Positions 29,881-59,559 of a stretch of DNA of 64,000 bases are shown piece by piece. The notes under the pieces were generated by a model, which saw nothing but the letters and a program-made list of their open reading frames with translations, made no database searches and was not told the DNA's origin. How positions within the stretch are numbered: the first letter of the stretch is position 1; every line of letters starts with the position of its first letter. The stretch is from assembly GCA_023213395.1 (NCBI GenBank), contig CM041465.1, positions 187,929,741 to 187,993,740 on the forward strand, read 5' to 3'. The DNA is from Cycas panzhihuaensis (lineage: Eukaryota > Plantae > Cycadophyta). The position numbers were made by a program, and so were the translations under genes.

Positions 29881-30109
29881 AGAGCATTATTCCAGTAGGA
29901 ATCAACTGGATGTATATTACGAGTTGATTGAAGTTGCAGACAACAAAAGTTGTCCTAGTACCAGAACTAGGAATCTACACCGATGCATAAATAGCAAAAA
30001 AATTACAAAAAAGAAAAAAAAGAAAAAATTAATTGTAACTCACAAAATCATATACTTAAGCAGAGTCTTGGACAGAATACCACATAAATCGGACAATTAT
30101 TTCATAAAA

Positions 30110-30430: not shown

Positions 30431-30616
30431 ATCAGAAAGCAACGAGTGCCACAGAAAGAAAGCAGCAAGCAAGCATTCCATCCTCCATTCGAGAGAGTGA
30501 ACACACGCCTATGCTCGACATCCAAAACAATGAACGAACTAGGGTTATAAATACTTTGTATTTATTTTCAATATTAAATTTCAATTGCCTACGTTCCCTC
30601 CCTTTTCTGACCATAG

Positions 30617-31695
30617 GATGAAGATTGTAGGGATTTAAGAGACCTATCTGCCAAAACTCCAAGTAGAGATTGAGGAATTACCAATGTCCTTCCAAGATGA
30701 GATCAGACAAGCAAGATGGGGAGATTTTATTCTAATGCCTCCATTATACCGTGATTTTGAGCTTATGGAGTAGATTATAGTGGCTTTAAAAGTAAACATA
30801 GGGAAGCTTGAGGTGAGTTTAGAAGCTATTCATTTTGTGACAAGATTATTAAAAGAAGGGGAAGTTCCGACAGCCACAAAAAGGTCTGAGGTGGATTGGG
30901 AAATTTGGACACGAGAGCTATGTAATCCCAATACCCAAGTTTACTCTAGAGGAATTAAAATTGTGGATATCAGGGATAGCTAGTTACGATGGGCAGTGAA
31001 AATTATTGGGACCAAATTTTTGTTAAAACAAAAACACACTTATATTTCAGGAGGTATGATGCCCATACTATCATCATTGCGTGATGGGGTTTAGATGAAT
31101 GGTGTGAATTCCTCGCAAATAGTATAGAACAATAGTTTGGGGAATTACAAACTCACCCCTTTTGACAACCATCACTATTATTGGCCCCTCCTATTTTAGC
31201 AATGCCTAGATGCTAAGTCCCCATCCTTGCCTATCTGACTAGGGGAACCCACAATTAAAAAATGGATAAACACTATGCCTACTACTGCTCAAGATCCAAC
31301 AGTAAAAGGACAGTAAAAGCAGAAATGACCAAAATCTTGAGGTGGATTCAGCACAAACTAGGGGCTCCTTTTCCTCTACGACAAAACAAGTGACTAAGAA
31401 GGGCATCAAGCAAGGTAGGGAGCAACAAAAGGAAGAAATTATATGCAAATAATGGAAGATGGAGCCTCCGCTTACATCAGTGACTGAACCTGGAAAAGGT
31501 TCTTCTGAACAACCATTTAGGGAAAAAGGGAAACATATTATCCGGCTTCTAGTGGAATTCGAGCAAGGCTACAAAGCAGAGATCGCAGATCTACATGAAA
31601 AAATGAAAGAAAGGGATGCTATTATAGCTACATTGACCCAAATCAATGAAGAATTACTTCGAGCCAATGAGCCACTAGGGGAACTGGAACTATAG
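30617..31695 (+). pseudogene. Extra 3' ORF of gypsy A, disrupted
   Basis: LEVSLEAIHFVTRLLKEGEVPT...WTRELC...LRWAVKIIGTKFLLKQK...THPF*QPSLLL, ending in coiled-coil-like LHEKMKERDAIIATLTQINEEL. Confidence 0.78.
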
Positions 31696-32527
31696 GAGCA
31701 GTCCTAATTCAAGGAGGGAGGAGGAAGAAGAATGATTTTTTTTTTGAAAAGGATGCTTAACCATTTTTGTTGACCTCGGATAGATGTTACAATCGAAATT
31801 AACACTTGTGCGCCCGAAGGGAGGAACGTATGGTTAATTGTGATTTAATGTAGCTAATAAGTGTAGGACAATAGTTCGACAAGCGTTTGGGATGAAGAAT
31901 GGACGAGAAAATAGTGAACAAGCAAGCAGAACATTGTGTGTTCTGTCATAGGAATGCACTACACAAATAGAACGCATGCAACACAGTCTGGGAACGCACA
32001 AGGAATGATTGCGGAAAGGATAGGGCAGAAAGGAACCACGTGGATCAGAACCGTATGGACGCACGTGTGGACTAACCAACAACAAAACGGATTAACCCAG
32101 GGTTTGTTATGAAGAGGTGTGCATTAAGGAAAAGGGACATTTGTGACTCCTAGTCACAACTGTTCTCCAATAAGGATGCACAACCTATTTAAACATGATC
32201 AATCAAGGGGATTAATGTGAGAGCCGAGTAAAGTGATCCATTGGGCCCAATTTGGCACGAATAACCAGCCCAACATTGTATGGAAAAGAATGAGATGATG
32301 TAAACATTGACTATTGCTTAATGAAATTACACAGTTACATGGAATTTATGTGTATGAATGTAATGAGGAATGCATGATATTCTATCGTGTTTTATGATTA
32401 TATTGTGAACTTATGAGGCATAATTTAGTACATGAATGTGTATGTTGACTGCGAGCACACCCTAGACTATAGTGGAAACCTTGATAAGTGAATCTCTTAG
32501 TAGGACATATATAAAGTCAACACCATC

Positions 32528-35900: not shown

Positions 35901-36954
35901 TGATGGCCTTTTTGGTGGCTTCCTTGCCTTTGAAGGTTGCTTTGGTGGCATTGGAAGGTCCCTTGGCTATCAAATGCTTAGTTATAGCTTGCCATCACGA
36001 TGACAACCAGGGTTCTTTGGTCATTGGACATAATATGTATGGCGAAACTTTGGACCAGTCCCTCAATGGACTTGGGCAACGAAACCAATGTTGACTCCTA
36101 CTTTCGCCTTATGAAAGTATGCTTGTCAAAGGTGTCATTATCTGGTAGTCTAGTTAAGGTTTGGTCAACATAGCAATGTCATCATGGATCACATATATGG
36201 CATACTACTAATCATCATCATATTGTATATTTCCACATAACTTGCTATTTCATTAAGAAATATCACTGTCAAATGTCTTTTACATCACTGTGGGGAATGT
36301 TCCACATGCATTCCAACATAATATTACCTACATAAACTCGGCTTTGACACCTTTGAGACCATAATATAGACTCACTGACTCAACTCTCACCATTAAAATG
36401 GTGAATGAATGACAATAAATACACTATGCGTGCCTCTTGAGGAATGGTTGAGACTTTTGGACCCAATCATACCTTTTTATGATAAATAACACCTTTTCAC
36501 TTAATATACATTAATTATGCCTCTTAACACATTTTGTTTGCCTGTATCACTGTACAAACATATCACTAAGGATGGCATCAACATCTTTGGAATGCACCAC
36601 TTCAATTTGGGCGTGCATTCCATGCGCTCCTCACTATGTGTTTTTCATATGTTCTAAATTGTGTTGCATTCCATTCCGAAATACAACCTACTATGGGTTC
36701 CCTAAGAGCTCTATTTTGGCCTTTTCCACTATTTTCTGGCATGTATTACACTATACGTCCATCTGTTGATGCGTTCATGCATTCCTTAAGTTAGGATAAG
36801 CATGCATTCCTATGTTTCTATTGTCCAAAATCACCCAGGTACTAGATTTTACCCCAACAATAACCTTAGTGATATAATTAATAAATTCTTCTATTGTCAT
36901 CTCGTGAAAGTTTACGTTGAGTCGAATGAGACGTCTCACAGTTTCAACAATTTT

Positions 36955-37663: not shown

Positions 37664-40059
37664 CAATCTAGGGATATGGCCTATATTTAGTTGGGTGTTC
37701 TATTAAAGAGCATCTTCTCTTCATCTATTGTCATTTGGCAGAATGAAGTTTTTACACTCCATCTTTGTTATGGCTATAGTGCTATCCTCACAATGATGTT
37801 GCTTGGTGGTTCAATGATATTTATAATGTTTTGGAGTTGTTTTTGCTCACACTAGGATGGTTTCTTTGTCATTTATTTGGTCATACACCTCCTCCAAACA
37901 AACCACTATAAATACCTTTCGCACCACCAAAACAATTGAATATATATATGTGTGTGTGTATGCACGTGTGTATGTATATAAGAATAACTACTACCACCAC
38001 CTTAAGGATGTCATTGTTGCCTTCTGTGAAGTCATTATGGCCTTCTAAATATTTTGGCATCTCATATGTATATGCAAATGACTATCTAACATTGTGTTAA
38101 CACGATCATTTGCCTTTCAATAGAGCCTAACTTGTATCAGAGATGCCTAACACACCTTTGCTTTGCCATATCATGCAAAAATGAGGCTTAATTGTTTCCG
38201 AATGGGCCCAATCCATGTTGCTAATAGTCTATCAACTTTTTTGTGAGCCCAACATACTGTAACGAGCTTATACGAGTCAGATACTATTGAAATTTAATGC
38301 CAAATGGGTTATGGTGCCTTCACCACTACCTAATGATGTCATTCACAATTTGAAAATGTTGGCAATCAGTCTTTCATGCCTAATACAAAGTTTAAATGTT
38401 ATTCACACCTCATAACGATCGCTACTCCATTATTGCCTTTCTCATGACATCGTTGTCAACCTTATATGAGTTCAATGTCTCCAACAAATATATTTGTAGC
38501 TTCAACTGAGTGTAATCATTTTTAGATTGTCCACACATGCCTATCTTCCATCCAACACTGTAGAAACATAATTGGACCCGTCTAAAATCTTCCATACCTT
38601 CTTATAACGTCCAACAATGAGCAAACATCGTGAACAAACGAAAAACATGCCTTGAACGACTCATTTTTCTCCATTTTTATGACTGTATTACATCATTTTG
38701 TTCTCCTAGCAGTTAGAAAGAATCAACATCACCACTTCAAGGCTCTCATTCGCATTACCAAATAGCCTTTGATTCGATTTGGCTCTGTACTTGCTATGCC
38801 TTAACTGCACACCTCCATGGGCTCTGATACCATGTGAAGAAACATAGACATATATCGACAGGATCTTGGTCATGCACAACAAACACTCAGAGAACAATAC
38901 AGAGGTATTTGTGTGGGAAATCCTTATGGGAGAAAACCCATAGTTGAACTTAGGATAGCTTTATTATATTAAACATAGCTTGGTCTTGTGACTTGTTAGG
39001 ATCATTCGACCGTAGGGGTTAGGCCTATTAGGGCCTAATGCACCTTGGTACACTTGTACATTAATTTGTATCCATTGATTCCTATTCGATATCCACTAAC
39101 TTGTATGGGGTTGATATTTATAATACTCCAAGAATTACGTCCAACCAATGGCTGTAACTCTTTGTCATGTCCTATGACCTTTTGTCATGTCTCGTGATTC
39201 TTCATCATATCCCGTTGAATCCTCAATACTTGTCTCTTCGTATCTCTTCACTAAACCACGAGTCATTAGCCTGACACAAAGTTAGCCTCAATTGAGTTCA
39301 CTAACAATGGGCATGCAAAAAGCACCAAAAAATAGAGCAAAAATCACGTGGAATGACATACAAGACCTGTGCCACTGACATGCACAGAGATTCAACAAAA
39401 AATTTGAACTAAAAATACTAAAAAAAAACCAATTTGTTTTGTCGCATGTCTGTCACCATCGACTTCTATAGGGAATATTCAATGGAATATTTCAAATTGA
39501 AAACTTTGGATATGATTTATCTTTCACTTTTCTAATATTAAGTGAAATTAAATCACATTCTATAAAATTTGAAGTTTGATTTTGAAGCCCCCTTCATTTC
39601 AACCCTTGGTCATGTGGAGCACAGGTTGCCAGGTCAGTTTTTGAGCATTCCAGAGGCCATTTTGGCATGTGAATATACCATGGAGCCCCCTTTTTTGAGA
39701 TCTTTTGGTAGTGGTCACATGTTGATGTTATATGTTTTTTTAGAAAATTGAAATTTATGTGTTTTTTAGCTAATTCCAGCTTCTTACAAGTAGTCTGAGG
39801 AAATAAAAATAGCTATGCCAGCTAGTTGCATGTAGATTGAAGTATCTTACAGTTTTCACCCTTTATTTCTGTGTTGCTTTAGTCGTTTTTCTAGTTAATT
39901 TTATGTGTGATTAGTCAAAATAGCTAGTGGAAGAGGTATAATGGGTTTTGTTACAGAAAAATTGATTGGTCTTTATGTGTGGGGAATAAGTCATAAAAAG
40001 AATTGAAAGAAATTTGAAGAAAAATAGTGTATAACTTTAGTTTTGGTTGTAATTTAAAC

Positions 40060-40370: not shown

Positions 40371-42460
40371 AACTGTGATTAAATTGTAATTAAAAGGCTT
40401 ATTTCCATGTGAACATAATGTAATGGTTAAAGTTAGTTGGAATGACTAAGGTTGTTGATGTCACAGACAATATCATACTTGTATAAGTTCGATTAATGCA
40501 ATAGGGGAAGCAGGTAATAGTTTGGGACTTTTCTTCCTGTATTCTTGATTATATGGCTTGAGCTGCAACTTGTACAAATTTGGTTGTACTATTCAACCTA
40601 TGTCTGGTTGTGAGAGGACTAGACGTAGGGCCCTTATTTGCAATAAAGATTAGGTTTGCATTCCTATCGACTTAACTTGTGCCTGCCTATCGAAGTAATG
40701 CACATAAATTGATGTGAGGTATGTAGAAGCACACATTGGTTCCATTGCCGATTGAATCTAGGGAAAAGATATAAATATGGTGAAAGCTGAGTAGACAGTT
40801 GGTTTCGCTTCCATGCCACCAAGGGTTAGGGCTGAGAAGAGACCTAAGATGTGCCAAGAACGTGGAGAGTGTTGGGCAAAGGATAGAATCTAGGTGGGAG
40901 TCTAGAAACCCAGATTTTCAATTACACCAAAGAAACAGGTGAAGAGGCGACCACCTATAAAATCAACAAAGTAAAAAAAGCTGATTGTGGAAGAAGAAAT
41001 CAAAAAAGAGGATGAGGGTGACAAAGGAACAGTCAGAAGTCTTGCCCAAGAATTGGCAGCTTAGACAGAAGAAGAAGACTAAATGTGTGCATTGGAAGAG
41101 GATTGTTTCAAGGAAATTCACTTACAAGAAAGCGTGGCTGAAGAAAAGGAACCTATAGGAGTAATAATAACACCAAATGATGAAAGTAATTCCATAAATT
41201 TAGAATTGTACAGTACAACTAGCACAGGGTGGGACAATTATTTGATCGAAATAGGAACTCCCCTCACTCATATACTCATCCCTCTCTTTGATAGAATGAG
41301 TAGAAGGCTCATCGGGGTGATTACATCAACAATTGATCTGCTAGTACTAGAAGCAAGCCTTGAGCAGGCAAGAAGTATGACAGGAGAGGGTGACAATTTG
41401 CCAATTCGAGGAGGCATGAGTGCAAGAGGAGGAAGTCCATTGGAGAATCCCTCCTTGTTGATGAATGCAGGAGGAGGTGGCAATCAACCACCACCATGAG
41501 GGCTACCTTGAGGAACTGCATTAGGGGGAATAGGACAAGGGGGTCCTAATTTGATAAGCAGTATACCACCAATAGTCCCATATGGTATTGTGCAAAATGA
41601 TGCAGTATTTACAAGTTTGTAGTTTGATGGGTCTACGAATCTAGTGGATCACTTGACATTGTTTAGAAACATGTTGCAAATCAAACGAATTCGAGACCTT
41701 GATGAGATAAAAGCTAGATTTTTCTCAACACTACGAGGAGCAACGATTTCCTGGTTTCTATATGCTTCGCCATAGAACCCATCATGGGATCAACTTAAAG
41801 TATATTTCTTGGATTGCTTTCAAAAATTGAGGGACCCAATGGTGATTTTACAAGCTCTGGAGGAAATAACACAATTTTTAGGGGAGTCAGTGAATGATTT
41901 TGATGGTCAAATGAGGATCATCATGAACAAAATGGACGCATTGGCACCCATTAATTTGATGCTGGCAATGAAGTATTTTGTTCAAGGATTAACGCCATAG
42001 TTGCGATATAAAGTTATGCTTCATCCAATGCATAACTATGAGTAGGTTCAGGAATTAGCTCTAAAATTTGAGAATCAAATGAAGACTACGTATTCCCAGT
42101 GAATGATGCATGCGAATTCGGTCTTGAGAAAGATATTGCCTTTATCTAGACATCGCCATTAAGTGTGAATGTATAGCCATTCACGATGAATGGGCAGTAA
42201 ACAATATAGGCTCCACAAATGGGAACAAATCCAGAATTGGAAGCTTTAAGGAGGGAGGAGGAAACACTGAAACAACAACCACTTGTGTTTGTACCAACAA
42301 ATATGTAGCATAATCAAGAAATTAAAAAACTGCAACAAGAAGTGGCCCAACTACGCCTGGAGAAATCTAGAGAAAATATTTAGTGCCCCCCACCTTGCAA
42401 CCAACAAGGACAGTTAAAGAATGAGCATTTAGGATCGATAAAATGGTGTGAGAATTGTAG

Positions 42461-42552
42461 AAGAACTAACCACAATACGTGGGAATGTTTGTTCAGACAA
42501 GGCCTGAAGAACTAACCACAATACGTGGGAATGTTTCTTCAGACAAGGCCTG
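42461..42552 (+). repeat. 46-bp tandem duplication in the gag knuckle region of G
   Basis: aagaactaaccacaatacgtgggaatgttt(g/c)ttcagacaaggcctg occurs twice with one mismatch. Confidence 0.95.
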
Positions 42553-45500
42553 ACAATCCTAGAATGAAAGGTCCATAACATATTTTTTAAGAAAGCGGAA
42601 CGAGGCCGACAATATAAAGGTAAAACAAAGTCAACTCGATGTTTTCTTTGTCAAAGATGGGGACATTATAGGTCTGAATGTCCACTAGAAAAAAAGGGTG
42701 TTGAATTTATCTACGAAGAATGTGGACCTGTGGACCATGAATGGGCCAATTGTTTGAAGAACATGAAAGTGCAAACGACCAACTTAGTTACAAAAATACT
42801 AGACAAGGAAGTTCTGTCCTATTTACAGACTAGGAGCGGAAAAGTAGTAACCATGCTAGTTCAGAACAATTTCCTAGAACCTGCGGTGGAAAAACAAAGA
42901 CTTTAGGAAGCAGTGAAGATCCTCCAAGAAGCCATGAATGTAGTTCAACAAGAAGAAAAACAATAGGAGCAAAGATTCAAGGGTCAAGTATATAAAAGGA
43001 GATCAGTCCTTGTTGAAATTCCACCACCAAAGGAAGGTATGAACCCTTGGTAGAGATTTTAGTCTATTAAGGATTTGTTAATAGAATTAGGAGTTTTGAT
43101 TCCAATTGCTGCAGTATTTAGATGGTGGGAGGTAGGCTATTTTCAGTGGATTGTGTTGGATCAAATTGAAAAGCTTGTGCTCAAAGCAATAAAAGAAAAT
43201 GGAGTGGACTCTAGGGTACCAATGGTGATTCTTGGGACAATGCTATGCAGAACAATTATGGATGGAGGATCAGGTGTAAATGTATTGCTATAATCTTCAT
43301 GGATAGAATTAGGAAGGCCCAAAGTGGTTGCCTTAGACTATGCCATAAGATTGGCAAATCAATTGCAAGTGAGGCCAATGGGAACATTGATGAATGTTCT
43401 GATGACTGTGGCAGGAATAACTGTCTTGGTGGACTTTGTAGTGGTTAAAATGCAATGTTAGAAAAAAACTTATCCAGCGTTGCTTGGTAGGCCATGTTTA
43501 CTGGTCACTAAAGCTATTCAAGATTGGAGCAAGTACACATTTATATTATCAACTGGAAATAAAATAGTTACCCTGCCCTTATGCTCAGATGGACCTCAAA
43601 TTGAAAAAATTAAGGATGTTGAAAGAGCCTCCTTCGCAATGGTGGAAATAAAATCAACGGTAAGTCCCTGTTCGGAAAGGACATACAAATTGCAATCCAC
43701 CATACCTAGCAATGCATCTTCTTCCTATATGCTAAACTGGCTTCAAAATGCATGGGATGAAACTGAACCAACAACTTGCTACCGACTGGAGATGTGCCCA
43801 GACTCCTCGGATGAGGAAGAAGAAGCTGATCCTAAGACAAGTAAGGAGCAGTCCCAGATACTCGGAGAAGGAGAACAAGGAATTCAAATGGATAAGATCC
43901 AAGACTTGTAGACAATGCGAGGTAACCCAAAATTATATAGCGAAATTGTTGAAAATTTTCCACAATTTTGGGGTTAAGAAAATGAGGCAGGAAATCATTT
44001 GAATCAATGTATTGATATATTGAAAAACAAGGAATGGTAAGAAGATTTTTGGTGCTATTTATTTCCAAAGTCCCTATTAGGACAAGCTTTTGCTTGGTAT
44101 GCTGCTTATTGTATGAAATTTAAAAATTGGTGTGACATAAGTCAAAACTTTTTAAATAGATTCTAGATGAAAGATAAGAATCTTCCTGAATTTTAGAATA
44201 GGGATAATCCCCATACACGCGGAAAGATGTGTCTTTAAATGGAACAAAACCCATGTTCTAAAAAGTGAATGGAGCCAACGACTGGTACATACTTTAGAAG
44301 GGGTGTGCCTAGTATGGTACCAATACTATGACAAATCACAGTTAGTAGAGTAGGATGAATTAGTGCAAAACTTTTGTCGCACCTTTGCATATCATAGCAA
44401 GGACAATAAAATCCAGAATATCTTGTATGCGTTAAAGCAGAAGTTAATGAGTCAAACTGAAGATTGTTTTCAAGTAGAAAGGATGGAACAAATTTTTGTG
44501 TCCCATAATTTAGATGAAGCACAAGATGGTCCAAAAAATGCATAGAATTTTCCTCCAGAATACTTTGTGACGAGTATGGAGACAGGATAATTGATAGAAC
44601 CCCACAATACATTTTGAACTAAGATGGCGAATCGGTGAAGGGGAAGCAACTAAAGACAAAGCAAATCAATATAGGGACAGAAGAACAACCCCAGTTAATC
44701 ACCATGGGAGATTACTGGGATGTGAAGACAATTAACCAAGCAACATCTTTGTTCTTGGAATACAAGGATGTCTTTGCTTGGTCCTATAAGGACCTAAAAG
44801 GCATTCTATCAGAATTGGGAGAACATCGAATAGAGTTGGTGGAGGGAGCAAAGCTGGTGAGGCAGTGCCCCTATAGAATGAACCCCAATTATAAATAGAA
44901 AGTGAAGGTAGAGATAGACAAGCTATTGGAAGCGGGATATATTTTTGAAGTTGACAATAGTGAATGGGTTAGTCCAGTAGTCTTAGTTCCCAAGAAGAAT
45001 GGGAAACTATGAATTTGTGTGGACTATAGAGCCTTAAATAAGGCCACAAAGAAAGACCCTTTTCCTATACCCTTCACCGAGGACATTTTGGAGAAGGTGG
45101 TAAGTCATGAAGTTTATTCGTTCACAGATGGGTTCAATGGATATAACCAGGTAAGAATAGCCCCTGAAGACCAATTAAAGACAACTTTTGTGATAGAATG
45201 GGGTACATATGCTTATAGGGTCATGCCCTTTGGCTTGACCAACGCACCAACCACATTCCAATGATTCATTCTAAACATTTTCCGACATATGATTGAAAAA
45301 ACCATTGAGGTATTTCTGGATGATTGGACCCTATACACCCGTCTGAAAAACCATCTTGGTAATTTGAGGATAATGCTAGAAACTTGCAGGAGAAATAATC
45401 TGTGTTTAATCCATACAAGTGTATATTCTTGGTTTCGTTTGGATCTCTACTGGGCACACAGTAATGAAGGCTTGCTAATGGACCCAGAAAAAGTGGCTGT

Positions 45501-48500
45501 CATCTTGAACTTTCCAATGCCTGAGACAGTTAAGCAATTAAAAGGGTTCTTGGGAATGACAGGTTATTATAGGAAGTTTATCACAGAATATGTCAAGATA
45601 GCAAATCCCCTTGAAATGTTGTTAAAGAAAAGACTAACGTGGCAATGGAATTTATAGCAGCAGTTAGCATTTGGTTTGTTGAAAAGAAAAGTAGTAGAGG
45701 CACTGGTCCTAAGATTTCTTGACTGGAATAAACCATTCCATGTACATGTGGATTCATCTCTCTTTGTGATAGGGTGCATGTTAACTCAGCCCAAAGATGG
45801 CAATATAGACTTTCCAACTATTTTGCCAGTTGAAAGTTGACACAGGTAGAGCAAAATTATTCAATAATAGAAAGAGAGGGCCTTTAAATGGTGTATGCAT
45901 TACAAAAATTTAGACATTATTTATTAGCTAATCCGTTTGTATTCTTTGTGGATCATCAGGCCTTGCAATATTTGATTAACAAACCAATCTTACAAGGAAG
46001 GATTAACAGGTGGGTGACGCTGTTTCAAGAATTAAATTTTAAAATCATTGTCAAGAAGGGGGAGAAACATACATTGCCCAATCAACTATCTAGAAATGTA
46101 AATGTAGAGGCTGCCACTAGAATTCAAGATGATTTTCCTGATACAAGATTGTTTTCAGTGGAAGTAGTACCAAAATGGTACGAGGGCATTGTGCAATATG
46201 TGTCAACAATGCGTACACCAATTGGGTTGGAATGAGTGGAACAACAAAGTTTTATTAGAAAGATATTTCCATTCCAATTGATCCAAGGTATGTTGTATAA
46301 GCTTGGGCCTGATGGAGTTCTCATACAATGTATATTAAAACATGAAGTAGAAGCAGTGGTATGGGAAGCTCATGAGGGAGTTGTAGAAAAGTACCAAAGC
46401 ACGGAGCCAATTGCTAGAAAGATCTTGCTAGTAGGATTATGGTGGGCCATGCGATTTGAAGATGTGGAAAAATGGGTCAAGGCTTGTGATATTTGCCAAA
46501 GAGTTGGTAAACTAGGTAAACTTCACTTCATGCCTTTACATCTGATTTTAGCCCAAGGCCCATTCAAGAAGTGGAGATTAGATTTCATAGGACCAATTAG
46601 CCCACCGACAAAGAGGACAAATGCCAAGGATATTCTTGTTGCCATTGATTTCCTCACTAAGTGAATGGAAGCAAAGCCTATGAAGACATTTGATGCTCAT
46701 AGCATTGCACATTTTCTGTACGAAATGATAATTGTTTGTTTTGGATGCCCACTTGAAATCGTATTCGATTAGGATAATAGTTTTCTAAACCATACAATTC
46801 AACACCTTACTATGGAATTCTTGATCCAGCATAGGAAGTCTTTGTTGTACTACCCTAGGGCCAATGGTCAGGTAGAAAGTACAAATAAAATCTTAAAGTT
46901 GGCCATGACAAAGATCTGTAGTGAAGGTAGGACGGATTGGGTAGAACGACTACATTCAATTTTATGGGCAGATAGAACGATAGTAAAGCGACCCCACAAG
47001 TAGACACCATTTCAATTGGTGTATGGATTAGAAGCGACCGTTCCTTTGGAATTCCAAGCAAAAAGTCTGCGAATAATAGTCCAGTTGTGGATGGAAGAAA
47101 GGGATTTAAGAGAATAGCGACTCATAAAACTTACGAAACTAGACGAATGACAAGCTAGAGCATTGTGGGAAATCAGGATGGAAAAGAACCATTGCAAAGC
47201 CTGGCATGACAAATATTTGAGAATGGCTCAATTCCAAGTTGGTGATTTAGTACTACTGCATGATAGTAAGTTTTGAGTTAAATTAAGGAAGATGAAGTTC
47301 AAATGGTTAGGTCCATATAGGGTGGACCAAATTGGACAAAATGGAGTTGTTTGACTCATACAGCTTGACGGATCCCTCATGGCTAAACCTATAAATGATA
47401 GTCGATTCAAGCCATATAGGTGTTGAAAAAAAAAACAAAGAATGCAAATCAGATGGGCATACTTGCTCTCTCATGGTGATGATGTAGTTGGCGAGGTTAT
47501 AATCTAGTGAAGTGTCGAAGCTGGAAACTCATCAATGGAATCCTCCTAACAATTGGTAACTGAAAATGGATGGTTGGATTGTTCATGATAAGATATTATT
47601 AAAAGCATATAATGATCGTGATATGTGATTAAGGAGTGTGACATGTGAAAGACTATCATAGTCATGAGTTAGTAAGCATGATTGACAGTGCGAAAAGTAC
47701 TAAAGGTTGTCAATGTAAGAAACCTTCAATTAATGAAGATGAAATTCATTGATTATGTGAGAGAGACTCTATATATACAACGGTTGTTTGTAACTGTTCA
47801 TTGTTGGTACGACACTTGTTTAACACATGACCCTCATGATGTCCTAGATAAAACATTACCTTTAACACCCTCTCTTAATGTTTTATCTATTTTAAACCAA
47901 GCCTTTTTCTAAAGAATTGAAATTTATCCTTATTGGGAGGTTTTGTTAGGATATCTACAAGTTGTTCATTTGTTGTATAATGTAATTGGTCTATCTTCTT
48001 GTTTTATACTTTCTCCCGTATGAAGTGATGATGTACTTCAATATGCTTGGTTCGTGCATGGAAGACTGGATTCTTGGTCAATTTAATTGTACTCTGATTA
48101 TCACGGAACAATGTTGTTGACTCTTGTTGCTGTTGAGTTAAATCTGTTAGTAATTGTCTTAACCAAATTGCCTCACAGGATGCTGTTGACTACTGGGGTG
48201 TCTTATTACACTTACAAGATACCTCTGCTCACTTGTCAAGGTTACACAGTGCTATAGTCTAGTTCGTGGTAATCACAACATGGTCATTCACATACATTCC
48301 ACATATATTTCATGAATGGTACATGTATACGTAAATCAATGCATACTCAGCAATTCATCATCACAACACAAAGAATACACCACTTTCCATGTAACTCTTC
48401 CTTTTATTAAGTAATCAAGTCAATTTACACAGAGGCTGGAATGTATTCATGAGCATTCCAGTAGCATACAATCTTTCTGTTACACATGCGTACCCAGATG

Positions 48501-49464
48501 GTACTTATCATACAGTGCTGCTCCAATTGGCTGACATATGTGCTGACTTCCGCACCTTTGCGTACCCGTGATAATTGGCTCTCACCCTAACCTGGTGGTT
48601 CATGCGTACCTCCTTAAGTACTCATGTTGGTACCTTTTGGATGAAGGGTTATGACCGTCATAACTGCATTCTTCATCATACGTACCTTTCTATTAATCAC
48701 TTGTTTAGGCACTTAATTAATAAACCTTTGTGTCCATATATCCGTACGTACGTCTGGCAGCTCAACATGTCTTCACTGGTTCCTTTGAGTCATGCGTACT
48801 GCTTCCGCTCGGTTCCATTCCGCCGTTAGTAATGTATCATCATACGCACTGCCTGTACATACCGCCATAATGCACCTGAATGCCGATTTCTTTGCCGTTT
48901 TGCCTCGTGCGTACCTCTGTATGGTCCGTACCTACACAACTCAGGTTATCTGACCTACCTCTGGTCCTTTCGCAGCCATAGGATCATTTTAGACTCAACA
49001 TCTATCCCGGGTCAACAGTTATGGGTTTGAGCATCCTTGCTCAACAAAACTCCAAAAAATTTCAAAATTTCGGGGTATTCCTCCCCTGCTCGGTCTCAAG
49101 GCGGCTCCTGCTGCCTCTGTCCTCCCAAAATTTCCTCATTTATCTGTTAGGGTGGCAATAATAGCATCCTTCTCTTTTATTTTGTCCTTCTGGCACCCTG
49201 TTGTCCTCATGCTGGTTGCGGAGTCCCAGAGATAATAAAGAAAACCTAAGCGTACAAATCGGAACCCTACGTACGTGCCTCTGAGGAACGCTTGCCGTTT
49301 TTGTGTCTTTGCGTACTGCGATGCGTACCAGAGCAAGTTCTTTGCGTGTTGTGCCGTATGGATGTTTGGCGAATTTTCCGGAGTCCGTTCCGCTCTGCGT
49401 ACTGCATGGGAATGCTCGTAGGTACGTAATGATTTGTCGTTTTGCGGAATTTTGTCTTATACGT

Positions 49465-49870
49465 GCCTGTGGTACGTATAGTGTTAAGAGTCTCCATTAT
49501 GCGTACTCGATTACGTACGTTTTTGATACATAAAATGTAACTAAGCACTTGAGTGTATTTTACACAGTGCGTACCCGACTACGTACTTTTTTGGTACGTA
49601 TAATGTAGTCGTTTAACTTAATTCTCTTTGCACTGTGCATACCTGCTATGTACTTTTCGTGCACGTATAATGTATTTGAGCTACTTAAAATTTGTTTACC
49701 CGTGTGTACCGATGTACTTTCGTGCACGTATAGTGTAATTTCGAGTCACTTTTTTGAACTGTGCGTACTTCAGTGTATTTCCGTGGTACGTATGGTGTAT
49801 GTTTTCATTTTGATCACTTTTTTAACTGTACGTACCTGGTAACATACCATTTTGGTACGTATACTGTATT
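49465..49870. repeat. GTAC-rich ~60-68-bp tandem array (6-7 units) in the 3' non-coding region of B
   Basis: Conserved block GTGCGTACC..TACGTACTTT..GGTACGTATA.TGTA at ~49499, 49567, 49635, 49702, 49761 and 49828. Confidence 0.85.
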
Positions 49871-50160
49871 TTGCTTGTATGCCTTGGATTTTTCCTCTGA
49901 TTTTTTCAATTGCTGATGCTATTACTTATGTCTGTGATGAGTTACAGTTATTTTTTATTTTTTCCAATTTTTTTTTTCTCTTTTTGTATCCATACCGAAC
50001 TGGATCATGGCTCGGTATCAAGGCATTTGATTGTGCCTCAATGTCATGCAATACGATATGGTACAACCGGTGATCCTACCGGGTAAGTTGCTCCACCCTA
50101 GTTGATATAGGGTTTCAGTTTACTACCCTTGACCAGTAGCTGGCCTGATAGTTTCTTCAA

Positions 50161-51522
50161 CTAGATAGTGCCATTCTGGTACACCTTCTCAATCAGATAT
50201 GGGCCTTGCCAATGCATCTTCAATTCTCCTTGGGTTGTTTGGGATTTGTTGTTGAACCGCCATACTCGATCACCCTTCTTGAAATACGATGTCTTGTCGT
50301 GGCGGTCGTGCCTTGTTCTTTTTCGCCTTTTCCTTGGTGTGGTATGCTTTGTCAATTTCTTCTTATGATCCCTTAATTGATCTTCTCCTAACCAATGTTC
50401 TCTACAATGTCTGAAATGGGAAATTCCATATAGTGGTTTTCCATAAAAGGGTTTCATATAATCTCCAACGTATTCTCCATGATTTTTGTCTTCTGGAATG
50501 GCAACTTTATTTCCTAGATCGGAATCTCTAGGGATACTCTCGGCAGTTTCCTTTTCTTTGTCCTCAAATTTGGCGCCGATGGTTGAAAAAGATCTTTCGC
50601 TGGGTAGGTGTACCTCTAAAGAAGATGAGGAAGGTTTGTTACTTCCTTCCTCGGGCTGGGATGGGGGTGGGGAAGGGCAATCTACCTCAAGACCCACACT
50701 GGAGGCAGAGGGAAGGTTAGGGTTAGAGGGGGTTGAGGTATTAGGAGGTGAATTAGGGTAAGGGTTTGGGTTAAAAGGGGGATTTGGGTTTGGGTCTAGG
50801 TTTTTAATGTTATTATTAACACTCGTATAATCAACAAATTCAGATTTAATATCAACTTCCTCAGTTACATTCCGAGAAAGTAGGTTACACTTATAGGATG
50901 AGGGGTTGACTTCATATGCGTCCCGTAGCCAATAATCCACAAATCTCATCTCGTTTTCATTGTCTGAAGAATTGTAGATTTCTCCAAAATAAGTCGGTTC
51001 TACTTTTTGGCGGTCGATTAATTTGGTAGGTTCTTCGGTCGTATGGTAGAGATTTTCTTCGCCGAACGAAGAAGTTGTTGCTTCACTCGCAATGGTTGTA
51101 CTTGAACCATCGTTAGGTATCACTTCAATGGAATTCTTTCCCAACATCGGTAATACTACTTCATTCCCTTCATCTGACAAGGTGAAGGTTACGTCTTTCC
51201 AACTTTGGAGACATTGGGTTTTGTATAGCCATGGTCTCCCCAATAAGGCCGGATAGGGAGTTGCACCTTTCTCCGTTTCCACAATCGTAAAATCGATCTT
51301 TACGACAATTCCTGCCACATCCACCTTGATGTCGGCCAATCTCCCCATAGGTCGTACCAGTAATTCGTTGGCCAATTTCAACGAATAGGTTGCCGCTTCC
51401 AACTTTGGGCTTCCCAGTTTACGCCATGTCGAAGCTGGTAACACGTTTACCGCTGCGCCTCCATCAACGATTACCCGTGGGAATGTTTCTCCCAAGACTG
51501 TCATGGTTACCATCGGATCCAT
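50161..51522 (-). CDS. Gypsy B protease (DGG) + Pro/Asn/Ser linker + integrase C-terminal GPY motif, in one 453-aa frame
   Basis: VIVDGGAAVNVLP...LLGRPWL...PNPNP...FKKGDRVW...HWQGPYLIEKVYQNGTI. Confidence 0.85.
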   Translation of the reverse strand: MDPMVTMTVLGETFPRVIVDGGAAVNVLPASTWRKLGSPKLEAATYSLKLANELLVRPMGRLADIKVDVAGIVVKIDFTIVETEKGATPYPALLGRPWLYKTQCLQSWKDVTFTLSDEGNEVVLPMLGKNSIEVIPNDGSSTTIASEATTSSFGEENLYHTTEEPTKLIDRQKVEPTYFGEIYNSSDNENEMRFVDYWLRDAYEVNPSSYKCNLLSRNVTEEVDIKSEFVDYTSVNNNIKNLDPNPNPPFNPNPYPNSPPNTSTPSNPNLPSASSVGLEVDCPSPPPSQPEEGSNKPSSSSLEVHLPSERSFSTIGAKFEDKEKETAESIPRDSDLGNKVAIPEDKNHGEYVGDYMKPFYGKPLYGISHFRHCREHWLGEDQLRDHKKKLTKHTTPRKRRKRTRHDRHDKTSYFKKGDRVWRFNNKSQTTQGELKMHWQGPYLIEKVYQNGTI

Positions 51523-51567
51523 ATCAAATGATGGTATGATTTGCTTTAGACTCTTGGTGATTCCCCG

Positions 51568-53730
51568 CTATAACACTCCTCCTTTGATCGAATCGATAAC
51601 TTGGCATAGAGGAATAGTCAACTGTAGCTGTTTTACCAAATTTTTCATTAATAGCAACATTCTGGGAATATCCTCAGCTGACAATCCTTTAAAAAGCTCC
51701 TCCATTTGCACCATTTGGGGCTTCATCTTAGGTTCTTCCGGTAGATTTTCTTGTTCCTTCTGTTTGTTCTTCCGTACATAGACGTATTTGGTTTCTGGTT
51801 TACCCATTGGTAATGCATTCTCCTCCCCGACTAGGCCATCTAATACTTGTTTTGCCTTTCTGTATCGATCCATTTCTGTCGGTGGATCTAGATATCCTTC
51901 ATCCAGTTTCTCCTTTTGTTTATTTTGTAGTTTGACGTTTTTTGCTTCCGGTATGATTGTCATTAGGTTGGTCGCTTTGGCTTTCCCTTTGCAATCTTCT
52001 GTTTTGTGGTCACTTGGGCCACAGTTACTACATACGAACGGCTTCTGTTCGTATTCACCTTCATTGGGCATTCGACTTCCGATTGCCCAAAGCTGGCAAA
52101 CAGATGAGGCATCTACCCATTGGCGGTTTTTTCCTCGAGGGTTCTGGTGCACCCCTTGTTGTATAAACATTAGGGTGGGTTGCCTCCCTTCCCCTACCTC
52201 GTCCTCTGAAGGCTTTTCCCACAGGATTGTAGAAACAATCCTTAGTTGTATCGTACCAACGTCGCATATATGGCACCATCTCTCTTGTTGGTGCAATGCA
52301 TTATTTTTTAAATTCAAGTCACATTCCTTGGTGGTATGTGAATTTTCTTCACAAATGTGGCACCATTTGGTTACTCTTCCCACATGGTCCTTCTTTTTTA
52401 GTGTTTCTTCTTCTTCTTCTCGGTTATTTCTAATTTTCAATCTGGCCACCTCTTTTCTTAATGCTTCCAATTCCGATTCCTCTTCTGCTACCCCTACCTG
52501 GCAGAAGGGTCGGTTGTACTGATTTTGTTTCAATTCTCTAATCTCATCTTGTAATCTCAGCAGCAGGGAGTCTTGTCCTCCTGCCTGCGCGTCCATTTCC
52601 ATTTCAAAATCTAATGCTAGATCTTGAGCATTCTTAAACGATTTCAGTGGATGAGCATGCATCATGGCTCGCAATTTCTCGTTCAACCCTCTTACAAAGT
52701 AGTTTTTTATATTGTGATCTGTTATCGTCTCGTTAATCATGCTAGCGGCAATGATTTTCATTCTGCTAATGTAGGTTAGGATGGATTCTCTCGGTCTTTG
52801 TCTGATTTCTCTTAACGCAATTTCCATTGCTTCATTACTGCGAAACTTTTGAAATCTTTCTTCGAATGCTTTCTTAAGCTTTACCCATGGCTCATTCTTA
52901 TTTGTTTCCTTGTACCATGCCAAGGGTACTCCTCTCAATGTACAGGTGAATCATGCTTTGATTTTGTCTTCGTTTGTAATCTTTTTTACACCAATAAGAC
53001 TCTGAAATAGATACACATGCTCTGCTGCGTCTGAAGTATCATTAAAAATCAGTTTCCCAAAGTCTCTATAGTCATCCATTTTGGGAGATTGCAACTGTCC
53101 CCCACCTGGTGGTGATTTTTCCTTTCTTCCCTCCTTCGGGGATGCACTGGGAGTGCCTACCGCTGTACTATCTTTCCCAAACAGCAGATTCTTGAATGGA
53201 GTTTTGATGTGTATGGGTTCCACTACACCTGGAACTTATATAGTCAATGGTGTCACTGTAATATACAATTGATCAGATCCCCTTTCTGTCAAATCTTCAA
53301 AAAGTTGTCTCGTTAGCTTATTCTCCCAATATGCCGAGGGACCTTTCTCCGCCTTCTTTTCACTATTACTTGGGTCCTTCGGGCTGTCCTCCACTGGTAT
53401 ACTTCCCTCTTTTAAGGTTTCTGGATGTTTTTCATCCACTTTTGGTTTCCCTTCAATCTCTGGGCTAAACAAATCATCTCTGATTGGGGCTGGTGTCAAT
53501 ACCATGCGTTCGCCATGAGTTTCCTCTTCCTGAGGTGTCTAGGCTCCACTTGCCTTAGATCCTTCAATGGACTGTCCCTTAGTCTCGCTGTTTTGCGAAC
53601 TTAACCTCCTCGCCCTTCTGAGTTTTGCTTCCTTCGACCATCTTAGTGCCCTTTGTCTGCTGGTCTCCTTTTCCTTGGGTGAAGTATCCTTCTGGGGCTC
53701 TTCCGACCTTGAAGGCCTCTTAGGTGGCAT
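51568..53730 (-). pseudogene. Gypsy B gag (few stops and frameshifts)
   Basis: MPPKRPSR start; EHVYLFQ...RGVPLAWYK...WVKLKKAFEERF...QRPRESILTY; four CCHC-type knuckles. Confidence 0.88.
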
Positions 53731-56700
53731 TGGAAGGTCCCTTGGGCGCGATGGCTTAGTTCTGACCCGCCATCACGACGGCAGCCAGGGTCCTCTGCCC
53801 TTTACACATTCTTTTCTTTGAAACCCCTAGGCCCTGTCCCTCCTCAACGGATGTAGGCAACGGATCCAATGTTGACTGCTGGGGTGTCTTATTACACTTA
53901 CAAGATACCTTTGCTCACTTGTCAAGGTTACACAGTGCTATAGTCTAGTTCAGGATACTGTCAACATGGTCATTCACATACATTCCACGTATATTTCACA
54001 GAATGGTACACGTATGCAATCAATGCATACTCAGCAATTCATCATCACAACACAAAGAATACACCACTTTCCACATAACTCTTCCTTTTATTAAGTAATC
54101 AAGTCAATTTACACAGAGGCTGGAATGCATTCCTGAGCATTCTAGCGACATCTGATCCTTCATTACACATGCGTGCCGGATGGTACTTATCATACGGTCT
54201 TTGCTCCAATTGGCTGACATATGTGCTGACTTCCGCACCTTTGCGTACCCGTGATAATCGGCTCTCACCCTAACCTGGTGGTTCATGCGTACCTCCTTAA
54301 GTACTCATGTTGGTACCTTTTGGCTGAAGGGTTATGACTGCCTGTCATAACCGTACCCCTTCAGTCATACGTACCTTTCCATTAATCACTTGTTTAGGCA
54401 CTTAATTAATTATCCTTTGTGTCCGTACGTCCGTACGTACGTCTGGCAACTCAACAAGTCTTCACTGGTCCCTTTGAGTCATGCGTCAGCTTCGATCAAT
54501 TCCATTCACGTTGATGCGTATCATCATACGTGCCGTTGCACGTGCACTGCCATACGAATGCCGCCAATTTTTTTGCCATTTTGCCTCGTGCGTACCTTTG
54601 TACGGTCCGTACCTGCACAACTCAGGTTATCTGACCTACCTCTGGTCCTCTCGCAGCCATAGGATCATTTTAGACTCCAACAGATGCACTGACTGCTGAC
54701 TTGTATTCTGCTTTGATAGAAGACAAGGCAATTGTTGGTTGTCGTTTACTGCTGTAGAATATTGCGGTTGACCCAAAGAAGAAACAATACCCACTGGTTG
54801 ACTTTCTTTTTTCTTTATCTTTTGCCTAGTCTGAATCACAGCACCCAATTAACATACTTGTCTCATTCTTTGGATATGTGAATTTTAAATCTGAAATCCC
54901 TTTCAGATATTTGAGTATCCTCTTTGTTGCCTTCCAATGTGCTAGTTTTGGATCTTGCATATACCTGGAGATTACTCCATCGGAGTATGAAATATCATGT
55001 CTGGTTGTAGTGAGATATATCAGACTTCCAACTAATTGTTTGTATAGAGTTGTATCGACTGAAGTATCTTTTGTAGATGGACTTAAGTCGCACTCAATTT
55101 CTATGGGGGTAGCACAACTATTACATTCTTCCATTTTGAATTTTAACAGAAGATCCTTGGTATACTTGATTTATGACAGAGTGATTGAATCTTTCTTTTG
55201 ATTAACTTCTATACTAAGGTAATAATTTAGAAGTCCTAAATTAGTCATCTCAAAACCTTTTTCTAATTGCACTTTTATATCTATGATGGACTCTATGTCA
55301 CTACCTGTGAGAATCATGTCAGTTACATCTACTACAATTATTGTGATTAGCTCTTGATTTTTCTTTACATACAGATTGGAATCTGATTAGCATCCGTGAA
55401 ACCCATTTTGAATGAGATACTTGTCCAATTTGGCATACCAAGCCCTTGGAGTTTGTTTTTGCCCATATAGGGCTTTTTTCAGCCTGCATACAAGATGTTT
55501 TTGTATGTTTTGAATATATCCTTCTGGTTGCCTCATATAAGCCTCTTCTTCAAGATACCCATTCAAAAAGGCACTTTTCACGTCCACTTGATAGACTTTC
55601 CAATTTTATTACGCAACAAAGGCTATTACCATCTTAACTGTATTTAGTTTGGCTACTCGAGAGAAGGTGTCATTATAGTCTACTCCAACAGTCTGAATGT
55701 AGCCCTTGGCCACCCATTTGGCCTTGTACTTTTCTATCTTGCCATCAGAATTTTCTTTTATTTTATAAAGCCACTTATAGGTGACAATAGGTTTGCCTAT
55801 AGGTGGTTCAACCATTTCTCAAGTTTTGTTTTTGGAGATAGATTCCATTTTTGTGTCCATTGCAGCTTGCCACTATGTATGCTAACTTACTTCTTCATAT
55901 GATTGTGGTTCAACAGAGCAGAATAGGGCTTGATGTTTTTGGGCCCTTGTTCTATGAGTGAATACGTCTCCTTTGGCTTCCTCAATGGTTTTGAGATACC
56001 ATTTGGGTATTTTTTTGGAGAATGGTCTCCTTTCTTCATCTTCCTCAAGACTTGAATCTCTAAAGGGCGAAGGTGCCCTTCCTAATTTTTCTTCTTCATC
56101 CGTTCCTATGTCTTTAGATGTGATTCTTGAAATATCTTTAGGTGGAAGAACTTCCACTGGAGACTCCTTTGCAGGCTCTTCAATTTCCTAATATGGTAAT
56201 GGGCTTGCAATAATGTCTTTTTCATTGAATATAACATCTCTAGTTACATAAATCGTATTTGTTTTGGGGTCTAAGCATCTATAGGCTTTTGAATTTTTGT
56301 TGTAGCCTATCATTATGCATTATATGCTTTTACAATCAAGTTTTGATCTTTCTTTATCTGGAATGTGTACAAAAGCTTGGCAACCAAAGATTTTAAAATT
56401 ACTTACATTTGGCTTGTATCTTGTCCATGCCTCTTTTGGAGTCATTTTGATTAAGGCTTGTGTTGGACTTCGATTTATAAGATGAACAATTGTGTTTACA
56501 GCTTTTGCCTAATAAGTTTTTGAGATTTGTTTGTCTTGAGTCATGTTTCGAGCCATTTCCATAATTGTCCTGTTCATCTGTTCTACCACGCCATTCGATT
56601 AAGGTGTATATGAAGTTGTGATTTGTCGACATATCCCATGAGTTCTGCAAAATGCCTAAAATTCTTTCGAGATGTACTTGCCTCCTCCATCTGATTTGAT

Positions 56701-59559
56701 GCATTTTATGTTGTTTCCGCATTCCAATTCAGCTTTTGCCATGAATTCTTTGAATTTATCAAAGGTTTTAGATTTACAATAGAAAAAGTAAATCCCGACT
56801 ATCTTAGAAAAATCATCAATGAAAGTAAGAAAATATGATTGGTCCACATAGGCCAGTGTGTACTAATTCTAATTTGCTCCTTGCACGCCATTCAATATTT
56901 TGGGAAGGAAGGTGATGTTGTTTACCAAGTAGGTAGCCTTTACAAACAAAAGGATGAAATTGCCACATTAGGAAGTCCAACCATTCTCGAGTTTTTTAGC
57001 AATTCTAATATATCAGAAGAAATATGCCCATACTTCAAATGCTAGAGTTTGTTATTATCAACGTTTGCAATAGTAAAAGCTTTTACATCTTTGTTTGTAA
57101 TGATAGGGTTAGAGAGCAATTTATAAAGATCATTGCTTTCTATACCCTTAGCAATTACAGTGCCACCCTTTTTCATGTCTAAGACATAATAAAACCCTTC
57201 TTCATCAAAGATGATTCTTAGTTTTTTCTTTCTGAGCTGTGAAACAAAAAGGAGGGTTTTTTTCAACCCTAGAACAAAGAGAACATTGCAAATTTTTTGA
57301 ATAGTTCCTTTCATTTCAATTGCTATTGTTCCAACCCCTTAAATATTGAGAGGATATTTGTGTCCTAACTCTCCTAACTTGTTAGGAGAGTAGGGTTTTA
57401 GAGATACAAACCACTCTTCACAACCTGTCATATGCTTGGACGCTCCTGAGTCAATGTACAAGACATCATCTTTGAGGCTACCTGTGAGTGCGACTATAAA
57501 TGCCGTTTCTTCTTCATTTTCATAAAGATTGTTTTGCTCCTTGCTGTAGTTGCTAGTAAATCTTTTCCCTTTCTGTATGTCAACTCTTCTTTGTGAGCAT
57601 TGATATGGAAAGTGTCCTGTTTGCCCACAATGATAGCAAACGTCGAAGGCTCTGCAACTGCTTGAGAAGTGTCCAGGCATTCTACAGTTGAAGCATACCC
57701 TGGCATCTCTTGGTGGGATTGGTCACCCTCAGCCTCTATTTTCTTGCCATCTACCTTTGGACTGGTTTCTTAGGGGTTCTTCCGTGACCTCTTGATTGTC
57801 CTCGTCCTCTGGAGCCAAAACTGAGCTTGGATAGGAAAGCCTCTTCAATCTATGTCTCTTTCTCATGCCTCCTATTCCTTTGTTCTTGTCTGAGGAGAAG
57901 TCCTGTCAAAGTATCAAGTGACATAATAATAGTTTGATCATTATTCGTTATTGTGTTTACCATATTATCAAAGGATTTCAGAAGTTTGTTTACAATCATT
58001 TCAGTGAGTTTCTATTTAGGCAAATTTGCACTAGCATTGATCAAATCATTTCTAATTAAAGTTACTTTATGGATGAACTCTAAAATGCTCTCCTTTTCCT
58101 TCATATGTAATTTAAACAATTCTTCTTTTAGGGCCACAACCTTGGCATGACTGTTATGGCTGTAGAGTTGGCAAACACTTTTCAAACTTCTATAAAGGAG
58201 TTTAATCTTTCAACATACACCAAGAGGGGATCAGAAATAGATAACTTCAGAATTATTACTCTTGTATTGTCTCTTTCATCCAAATTGGGTTGAGCAACTG
58301 CATCATCAGGTCGTTCTTCTATCCCTGTGGCTATGTTCTAGGCATTTTTGGCTCTTAATAGGTTTTCAATCTTAATTTTCCATACAAAATAATCGGTTTT
58401 AGTCAATTTATCCTGATCATTCAATGCAAGAATGGAGGAGGCCATCTTAAAGACTGAACAAAAGATATTAGACTGACTTTTAAGATTTTGAACAGGCTGG
58501 TTGTACAACTGTACAGAATTTTGTATAAAAGTACAATTGTACGGATTTCAGAGTATAGGGTCCCACAAGGAAGATTTTAATTAGAGGATTCTAGATATGT
58601 AAAAATATTTGGGAGATCTACTTTTGTTTGTTCAGAAACAAGCCCAAAAACCTAGAATTGCTGCTAGTTTTTTTTGAAAAAAATGCTTGTGATTTAAAAA
58701 ATACCCAATCAAATGACTCAAAATTAGACTCAAAAGAAATAGACTGATCAGGCGAATAAATTTTGTCTGGTATTACCCAAAATGATCGAGTGATTTGAGT
58801 AGAATCTTTAGAGAAGTCTCCAAACTTGTGCAGTTAGAAAAGGGGCCAAAAGTGCTTGAAAATAAGCTCGAATGAATTCAACCCAGTTGAGAAAAGTGAC
58901 GGCCTCATCAAAATGCTCCTCTTGGTGAATTTCGTACGATTCTGAGTACTTCAAAAATTTTGGTTCGTACATATTCGTACAATAGTCGCTTTTTTGTACT
59001 TTGTTTGCTTCTCACACTATCTTTGAGAATTAAATGCCTTTTATCAATACCCTTCAACATATTTCTCAGTTACCTCTGGCTTCCTTCGAAGACAAACCTC
59101 CTCTTAGAACTTTATTAGATGACCAGTTTGCCCTGCTCTGATACCATGTAAGAAACCTTCAATTAATGAAGATGAAATTCATTGATCATGTGAGAAAGAC
59201 TCTCTCTATATATACAAGAGTCGTTTGTAACCGTTCATTGTCAATACGAAACTTGTTTGACAATTGTGTTTATTACAATTAGGAGGGGCTTAACACATGA
59301 TCCTCCTGATGCCCTAGATGAAACATTACCTTTAACAATTAAGTATAATGACGAGTGCTGAGTCACATCACAACTGTTGTAGACATAGTTATAAAGCTCC
59401 TGATTGAATTGGTAAAATCATACCTTTTTGTTTTGAAGCTAATGACGATTGTAGCTTGTTGTGAACTATTGTGCTTTCTATCTCTATGAATTGAAAGAAA
59501 TAACAAGCAATTCAACAATTATCATGCTGAAGGAGATAATTTTCTGTAAATCAATATCA

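Follow-up and report, generated by a model that had tools for sequence, protein, structure and literature searches.

Two domains resembling the N-terminal part of the Gag capsid lie inside pol, between the protease (PR) and the reverse transcriptase (RT), in a group of Ty3/gypsy long terminal repeat (LTR) retrotransposons from the cycad Cycas panzhihuaensis. The elements were found in a 64,000-nucleotide stretch of contig CM041465.1 (assembly GCA_023213395.1, positions 187,929,741 to 187,993,740 of the forward strand; hereafter the window, numbered from its first letter), and all of the evidence comes from four dead copies in this one window, named G, A, D and E. Both domains, here termed module 1 and module 2, occur in the same order and place in G, A and D, which are all the elements of the clade in the window that keep the region. 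The data support the proposal, first made from the sequence alone (the original prediction), of homology between the modules and the N-terminal portion of a Ty3/gypsy-type Gag capsid. The translations quoted with that proposal were recovered at the correct place and in the correct frame, and the homology itself is borne out by an independent Gag profile, by profile-profile alignment and by searches in the reverse direction.

The two modules are most fully laid out in element G, which lies on the plus strand with its internal region at about 41000-47600. Module 1, which resembles the capsid N-lobe, spans 43912-44205 (+) in the protease frame and is interrupted by stops at 43975, 44038, 44164 and 44194. 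Module 2, which resembles the N-lobe plus the next helix, spans 44207-44566 (+), contains stops at 44351 and 44543, and ends in the motif N-F-P-P-E-Y (44546-44563). One frame is common to PR, module 1 and RT; module 2 lies one frame off PR and RT by way of two compensating shifts.

The modules were scored with a hidden Markov model (HMM) built from 11 Gag domains, none of them from the window, belonging to proteins obtained by an RT-anchored phmmer search; all 11 exceed the Pfam Retrotrans_gag cut-off at the same residues. In a six-frame scan of the window with stops read as X, this external-Gag HMM gave 20.6 bits for G module 1 (43972-44181, profile columns 12-83), 18.3 bits for G module 2 (44285-44449) and 17.2 bits for A module 2 (26653-26892, columns 15-94), scores comparable to those of the elements' own Gag (39.1 bits in E, 22.3 bits in A and 12.8 bits in G, the last at 41647-41937). 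The best of 100 block-shuffled windows reached 1.5 bits, and reversed sequences produced no match to the profile. In a second scoring, each module was translated across its breaks, with X standing for every stop or frameshift, and compared with 7000 composition-matched decoys. None of the decoys equalled G module 1 (31.9 bits, E 3.5e-8), G module 2 (28.4 bits, E 4.2e-7), A module 2 (27.8 bits) or the joined A module 1 (13.6 bits), while 2 of the 7000 did so for D module 2 (10.2 bits) and 24 for D module 1 (5.7 bits).

Local hhalign comparison with the external Gag alignment gave a probability of 88% (P 2.8e-6) for the three modules 1 and of 96% (P 2.6e-9) for the three modules 2; the window's own Gag, used as a positive control, gave 97% (P 1.8e-10). 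In the reverse direction, the best external matches of HMMs built from the modules were true Gag domains of outside elements. MAFFT, given stop-free pieces only, aligned the modules in register with the Gag N-lobes; an H is nearly invariant, and the W, L.G and W(Y/F) positions are common to both.

The extent of the similarity differs between the two modules. Module 1 covers Gag profile columns 12-83 and ends after the W..L...F...F helix, making it an N-lobe only, of about 70 amino acids. Module 2, of about 100 amino acids, begins with F-D-P-P, covers columns 5-98 and runs into the next helix (L..L.Q...E-type). The idea that both copies lack the C-terminal half therefore holds for module 1 and needs amending for module 2, which reaches that helix; neither module has a capsid C-lobe or a zinc knuckle. 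The part that the modules share would correspond to the capsid N-terminal lobe, roughly Ty3_capsid positions 20-90, a mapping made through the Pfam coordinates of Ty3_capsid on the relative P0007 and of a weak Arc_capsid_dom match on P0119.

The same pair is present in two further elements. In A, module 1 is cut in two by a nested copia-like element: its first part (21217-21314, +), recognized by translation, scored 46.3 bits with a module-1 HMM, its second part (26514-26606, +) scored 5.0 bits with the external-Gag HMM (26505-26612), and the reading frame is continuous across the insertion. A module 2 (26611-27015, +) is in frame with RT, carries two in-frame stops and ends in N-F-P-P-E-Y. 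In D, module 1 (16716-16920, -) has two frameshifts and one stop, and module 2 (16318-16715, -) has one stop and one frameshift, the latter in a run of A; the last part of D module 2 shares the RT frame.

Element E retains the start of module 1 only (50380-50466, -; 8.3 bits with the module-1 HMM), within the open reading frame (ORF) 50164-51300. This element had been named B in the original prediction, which correctly saw that it keeps the start of module 1; to this must be added that the element is internally deleted, an in-frame deletion with its junction near 50380 joining the module-1 start to the integrase C-terminus. PR, spacer and module-1 start form a single ORF of 379 amino acids in E and likewise a single ORF in P0151, an independent natural Logan protein that shares the deletion junction of E and is 76% identical to it over the aligned 39% of the query. 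E and P0151 look like members of a non-autonomous subfamily that has propagated while retaining gag, PR and spacer. That the modules belong to the pol frame, after PR and before RT, is supported by the PR-side ORF in E and P0151 and by the frame common to module 2 and RT in A and D. The modules are flanked by neither LTRs nor target-site duplications (TSDs).

The whole region between PR and RT has a consistent architecture. After the protease come 110-250 amino acids of sequence that is not conserved and is either acidic or rich in Pro and Asn; then follow module 1, about 12 linker residues, module 2, an acidic stretch, the conserved motif N-F-[PS]-P-E-Y and finally RT. This is the most conserved short motif of the spacer and lies about 66-80 amino acids before the RT anchor in A, D and G (G 44546-44563, +; A 26995-27012, +; D 16321-16338, -); a similar ELNYPKTL occurs at -79 from the RT anchor in the P0019/P0015/P0014 family. 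We take the motif to resemble retropepsin sites such as the HIV-1 PR/RT junction, and it is a candidate protease cleavage site at the RT N-terminus. Pfam found no RNase_H or RVT_3 match in the spacer pieces of G, D, E and P0151, and no other Pfam family was found in spacer pieces.

Corresponding modules can be aligned across families, with z-scores of 4.9-10.5 for module 1 (D against A, 10.5; D against G, 8.4) and of 7.4-34.9 for module 2 (G against A, 17.9; G against D, 7.4; A against D, 34.9), which upholds the prediction that A and D carry the same pair as G. The amino-acid identity of module 2 between A and D is 43%, and that of their Gag is 44%. Between the low-complexity spacer of G and those of A and D, no similarity is detectable (z -0.4 to 0.2). 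Because the DNA identity of RT among A, D and G is only 65-67%, the modules are older than the divergence of these families. Identity at third codon positions is 0.29-0.47 throughout, also in RT, and is thus near random; the proportion of synonymous differences (pS) is 0.75-0.92, so that the synonymous rate (dS) is saturated and the ratio of non-synonymous to synonymous rates (dN/dS) yields no number. The proportion of non-synonymous differences (pN) is 0.35-0.51 for the modules, 0.35-0.48 for Gag and 0.17-0.18 for RT. The modules were thus under about the same constraint as Gag while the adjoining spacer drifted freely, and their predicted retention across diverged families is seen as conservation in the face of saturated synonymous sites.

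The remaining domains of G follow the usual order. Its own Gag capsid core (41584-41997, +) has two in-frame stops and a Pfam Retrotrans_gag match at 41776-41997 (E 6.7e-5), which at 23.5 bits falls just short of the cut-off of 24.1. A CCHC knuckle follows at about 42640-42681 (+). The aspartic protease (43063-43560, +) has DGGSG at 43261-43275 and in tblastn resembles the corresponding protease regions in A, D and E; an ALLGRP motif occurs in the piece 43462-43908, and the region of P0151 homologous to the G protease matches Pfam Asp_protease_2 weakly (21.2 bits, cut-off 24.3). The acidic low-complexity part of the spacer (43561-43911, +) belongs to no Pfam family, and the full PR-RT spacer of G measures about 350 amino acids. 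RT, RNase H and integrase occupy 44623-47351 (+), beginning at 44623, 45658 and 46236, respectively, with the integrase ending at 47351; they were identified by tblastn to A and D and by Pfam RT_RNaseH and Integrase_H2C2. In G, about 480 amino acids separate the end of PR from the point where the Pfam RT model begins, compared with about 210-250 in the relatives P0022 and P0047.

Relatives were collected by a phmmer search of an RT piece against 1.84 billion proteins, the closest being P0001 and P0031, both of them short Logan fragments. Each of the long relatives P0007, P0019, P0015, P0022 and P0047 has only one Gag and is without a module between PR and RT, as judged by Pfam and by eye for P0007 and P0019 and by Pfam, with no Retrotrans_gag between PR and RT, for P0022 and P0047; the PR-RT junction is about 130-250 amino acids in P0007, P0019, P0022 and P0047. 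A metagenome scan yielded 67 loci, all of them outgroups that lack modules and many on JGI (Ga-numbered) contigs, with RT identities of at most 57% except for short fragments. At least 1.3 kb upstream of RT was available for 48 of the 67, and none of these had a Gag-HMM match above 0 bits starting within 1.3 kb, the sole exception being L053 at 2.3 bits, which is noise-level; each had at most a normal Gag 2-4 kb upstream of RT. At L036 (68% identity), non-coding sequence lies upstream of a truncated RT. Since both the 48 loci and the long polyproteins (RT identity at most 57%) are without the modules, these mark one clade, and the earlier attribution to a whole gypsy lineage was too broad. As such they are a practical classification marker for the clade, whose members annotators expecting one GAG before PROT would misread as chimeras.

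A search of a set of 5.8 billion protein clusters, with an alignment of the C-terminal half of module 2 and with G 44171-44350 as queries, found no relative of the modules; the long ORF of E, searched against protein clusters, had P0151 as its only match. An odd gag-like match in P0116 was set aside because it looks like a chimeric gene model. Four further proteins (P0055, P0032, P0045, P0035) each contain two full Gag and two RT domains, an arrangement unlike that of the modules within pol; they look like products of gene prediction that joined tandem or nested elements. A full-text literature search found no description of capsid-like domains inside pol, and the layout of a capsid-like domain pair in this position seems undescribed.

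The window as a whole (GC about 38%) is made up of decayed plant-type LTR retrotransposons nested in one another, with no cellular gene in it and no Rfam family in an Rfam scan. The element map rests on self-comparison of the window and on target-site duplications. Element D (11184-36638, minus) has LTRs that are 78.8% identical, and its PR-RT spacer is split by A (17004-32522, plus; LTRs 84.7% identical; TSD CCATC). A is itself split, inside its module 1, by the copia-like element (21315-26513, TSD GTGTT), giving a three-level nesting with clean 5-bp duplications. Element E (48184-54682, minus) has LTRs that are 87.9% identical; like A, it has a 5-bp duplication (GATGC). A gag near 35174 and a PR near 33503 form the 5′ half of D, and self-comparison and target-site duplications led us to reject a separate element at this place. 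The assignment to Ty3/gypsy follows from the LTR pairs of A, D and E, the target-site duplications and the order gag, PR, RT, RNase H, integrase found by Pfam and tblastn. At 17713-17740 (+) in A, 36072-36098 (-) in D and 53852-53878 (-) in E, the common LTR end GTCAACA is followed by a sequence resembling a primer-binding site, TTGGTTTCGTTGCC in A and D and TTGGATCCGTTGCC in E.

A second, copia-like family is represented by four related stretches (47840-48178, 54779-58445, 61300-63994 and 21315-26513; 64-74% DNA identity), into one of which element E has inserted. Two copia-like stretches match the C-terminal part of the Gag profile weakly (25218-25361, -; 58048-58152, -), and resemble Ty1/copia gag by eye only. 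LTR-like repeats lie at 4364-5092 and 38833-39155: 4364-4686 matches 38833-39155 (78%), and 4679-5092 matches the LTR of A, inverted.

The explanation that we favour, with a probability of about 45%, is that two tandem N-lobe copies were gained in the PR-RT junction and that their product is a Pol-borne, capsid-binding accessory protein. An ancestor shared by at least four diverged Ty3/gypsy families (G, A, D, E) would have acquired two tandem partial copies of a capsid N-lobe, of the Retrotrans_gag or Ty3-capsid type, in the variable PR-RT junction of pol, the likely route being misaligned template switching or recombination. The module stretch would then be translated within Gag-Pol and probably freed by the protease, possibly at the N-F/P-P motif. 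Once released, the N-lobe-like domains could make the Gag contacts that are normal for capsid N-lobes, so that each Pol molecule would bring a capsid-binding accessory protein into the assembling particle, where it could keep the products of Pol attached to the shell or adjust assembly. A protease-released protein binding the Gag lattice is favoured because N-lobes are known for N-lobe contacts, as in RTL8, and because of the N-F-[PS]-P-E-Y motif. When the mechanism is narrowed to a Pol-encoded, protease-released double N-lobe that docks on the Gag lattice, serving either as a tether or scaffold for RT and integrase or as a dose-fixed modulator of assembly that an autonomous element carries in cis, in the manner of RTL8 or Ty1 p22, we regard it as unlikely in that exact form.

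Several observations weigh against this explanation. At the level of sequence pairs, the similarity of the G modules to G's own Gag is marginal (z 2.0-2.5, a score equalled or exceeded in 33-52 of 1000 shuffles), so that the resemblance which the original prediction drew between them stands at profile level and is weak pairwise. The stop-free module pieces do not reach the cut-off of Pfam PF03732 (24.1 bits), and the anticipated match to this family was obtained with the custom external-Gag HMM instead; the best piece for Pfam, A 26770-27078, has Retrotrans_gag as its top match in the right register at 13.3 bits (E 0.1), and other stop-free pieces have no Pfam match. A thin profile-profile comparison restricted to stop-free pieces gave a probability of 5% (P 0.007). 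Module pieces of G searched against the window by tblastn found only themselves at E < 0.01, the families being too diverged for BLAST. AlphaFold2 modelled the N-terminal part of D module 2 (61 amino acids, 11-row alignment) as three helices with a predicted local distance difference test score (pLDDT) of 64.9 and no Foldseek match in the PDB; the control behaved alike, a bona fide Gag piece of A giving a pLDDT of 59.7 and no capsid match in Foldseek, so that the fold comparison counts neither for nor against a capsid fold, and PDB sequence search was uninformative, being blind even to true Gag. Every module contains stops or frameshifts and all copies are dead, with LTR pairs 79-88% identical; no intact copy of the module region occurs in any collection searched, and the uninterrupted PR-module-RT ORF is one that we infer. 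The deletion derivative represented by E and P0151 has spread without full modules, so these are not needed in cis, and the PR-RT junction peptide of Ty3 is reportedly dispensable. Finally, the pN values come from alignment by protein, which inflates conservation at codon positions 1 and 2 somewhat, Gag having been handled alike.

The strongest alternative is that the modules are a tolerated relic, an ancient partial gag duplication that persists in a permissive PR-RT linker as a folded in-frame spacer with no capsid-related role, comparable to the Ty3 junction peptide. That the junction varies among relatives, from about 130-250 amino acids to about 480 in G, fits such a history, as do the much faster evolution of the modules relative to RT (pN 0.35-0.51 against 0.17-0.18) and the propagation of the E/P0151 subfamily without them. 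A mere spacer should, however, lose all similarity, as the adjoining low-complexity part did between G and A or D (z about 0), whereas the modules have kept the Gag hallmark positions in three families, score like true Gag on an outside profile and have a pN equal to that of Gag rather than that of neutral sequence. On balance we consider a relic rather unlikely, though the chief competitor to a capsid-binding accessory protein.

The modules could also act as a built-in negative regulator that limits assembly and sets copy number, as RTL8 does on PEG10 or p22 in Ty1. As capsid homologues that are truncated or reduced to the N-lobe, they belong with RTL8 in kind, and each polyprotein contains two of them. 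Against this, a product of the same ORF is fixed at a 1:1 ratio with Pol rather than being separately regulated, and selection would disfavour an inhibitor that an element makes in cis, except where competing elements are its main target. We consider the idea improbable.

That a Trp-rich helical spacer mimics the motif spacing of Gag by chance might be argued from the marginal pairwise similarity to G's own Gag, the Pfam scores below threshold and the P of 0.007 in the thin comparison; but shuffles never reach the six-frame scores, the decoys give 0 of 7000 for both G modules and both A modules, hhalign returns P values of 2.8e-6 and 2.6e-9, and the module HMMs match true Gag elsewhere, so that chance resemblance is largely refuted. 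An artefact of nesting, in which unrelated gag fragments inserted separately in each copy, is suggested by the heavily nested window and by the insertions that interrupt A module 1 and the D spacer, but is refuted by the shared order and position in three families, the similarity of matching modules across families, their being in frame with PR or RT without flanking LTRs or duplications, and the location elsewhere of the real insertions, which carry clear 5-bp duplications.

Compared with known systems, the modules share with the Ty3/gypsy Gag N-lobe (PF03732, PF19259; the N-lobe of Arc and PEG10) the motif series F.G...H(L/I), W, L.G.A..W(Y/F) and W..L...F...F. They differ from it in standing after the protease, in pol, in tandem and in truncated form, and the Gag of their own element stands as far from them as that of other lineages. 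The PR-RT junction peptide of Ty3, termed J, is said to be about 10 kDa with no reported capsid homology. It is likewise a separate, partly acidic stretch of polyprotein between PR and RT, whereas the stretch described here is about 350 amino acids long and contains two constrained capsid-like domains. Ty1 p22/p18 is reportedly the C-terminal half of a Ty1/copia Gag, made from an internal transcript and trans-dominant. It is thus an element-encoded truncated Gag that interferes with its own particles, while the modules are N-lobe copies in the pol of a gypsy element. With p22 and RTL8 they share being truncated capsid homologues without the parts required for assembly on their own, since neither module has a C-lobe or a zinc knuckle.

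Extra domains at the PR-RT junction have a precedent in the archaeal-type RNase H (aRH) that lies between PROT and RT in TatI elements of club-mosses and TatII elements of gymnosperms (Neumann et al. 2019, PMC6317226; Ustyantsev et al. 2015, PMC4408406). There too the domain belongs to plant gypsy elements other than chromoviruses and is a diagnostic feature of a clade; in TatI and TatII the insert is an enzyme, whereas here it would be a duplicated structural domain of the element itself. RTL8, an N-lobe-only capsid homologue, binds the N-lobe of PEG10, is taken up into the PEG10 particles and reduces the yield of these (Campodonico et al. 2024, PMC11684626). It is likewise limited to the N-lobe of a Ty3/gypsy-type Gag; unlike the modules, which are encoded in cis in the pol of a mobile element and for which binding is only proposed, it is a separate domesticated mammalian gene. 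If the modules did bind Gag, they would bear on how single-ORF elements handle the stoichiometry of Gag and Pol, on the retention of Pol in the particle and on the origin of capsid-derived regulators. Next to the two cases already known, N-lobe fragments that modulate particles from a separate gene (RTL8 on PEG10) and extra domains at the PR-RT junction (aRH), a constrained tandem N-lobe in pol would be a third, in which a structural domain of the element has been duplicated into its enzyme polyprotein.

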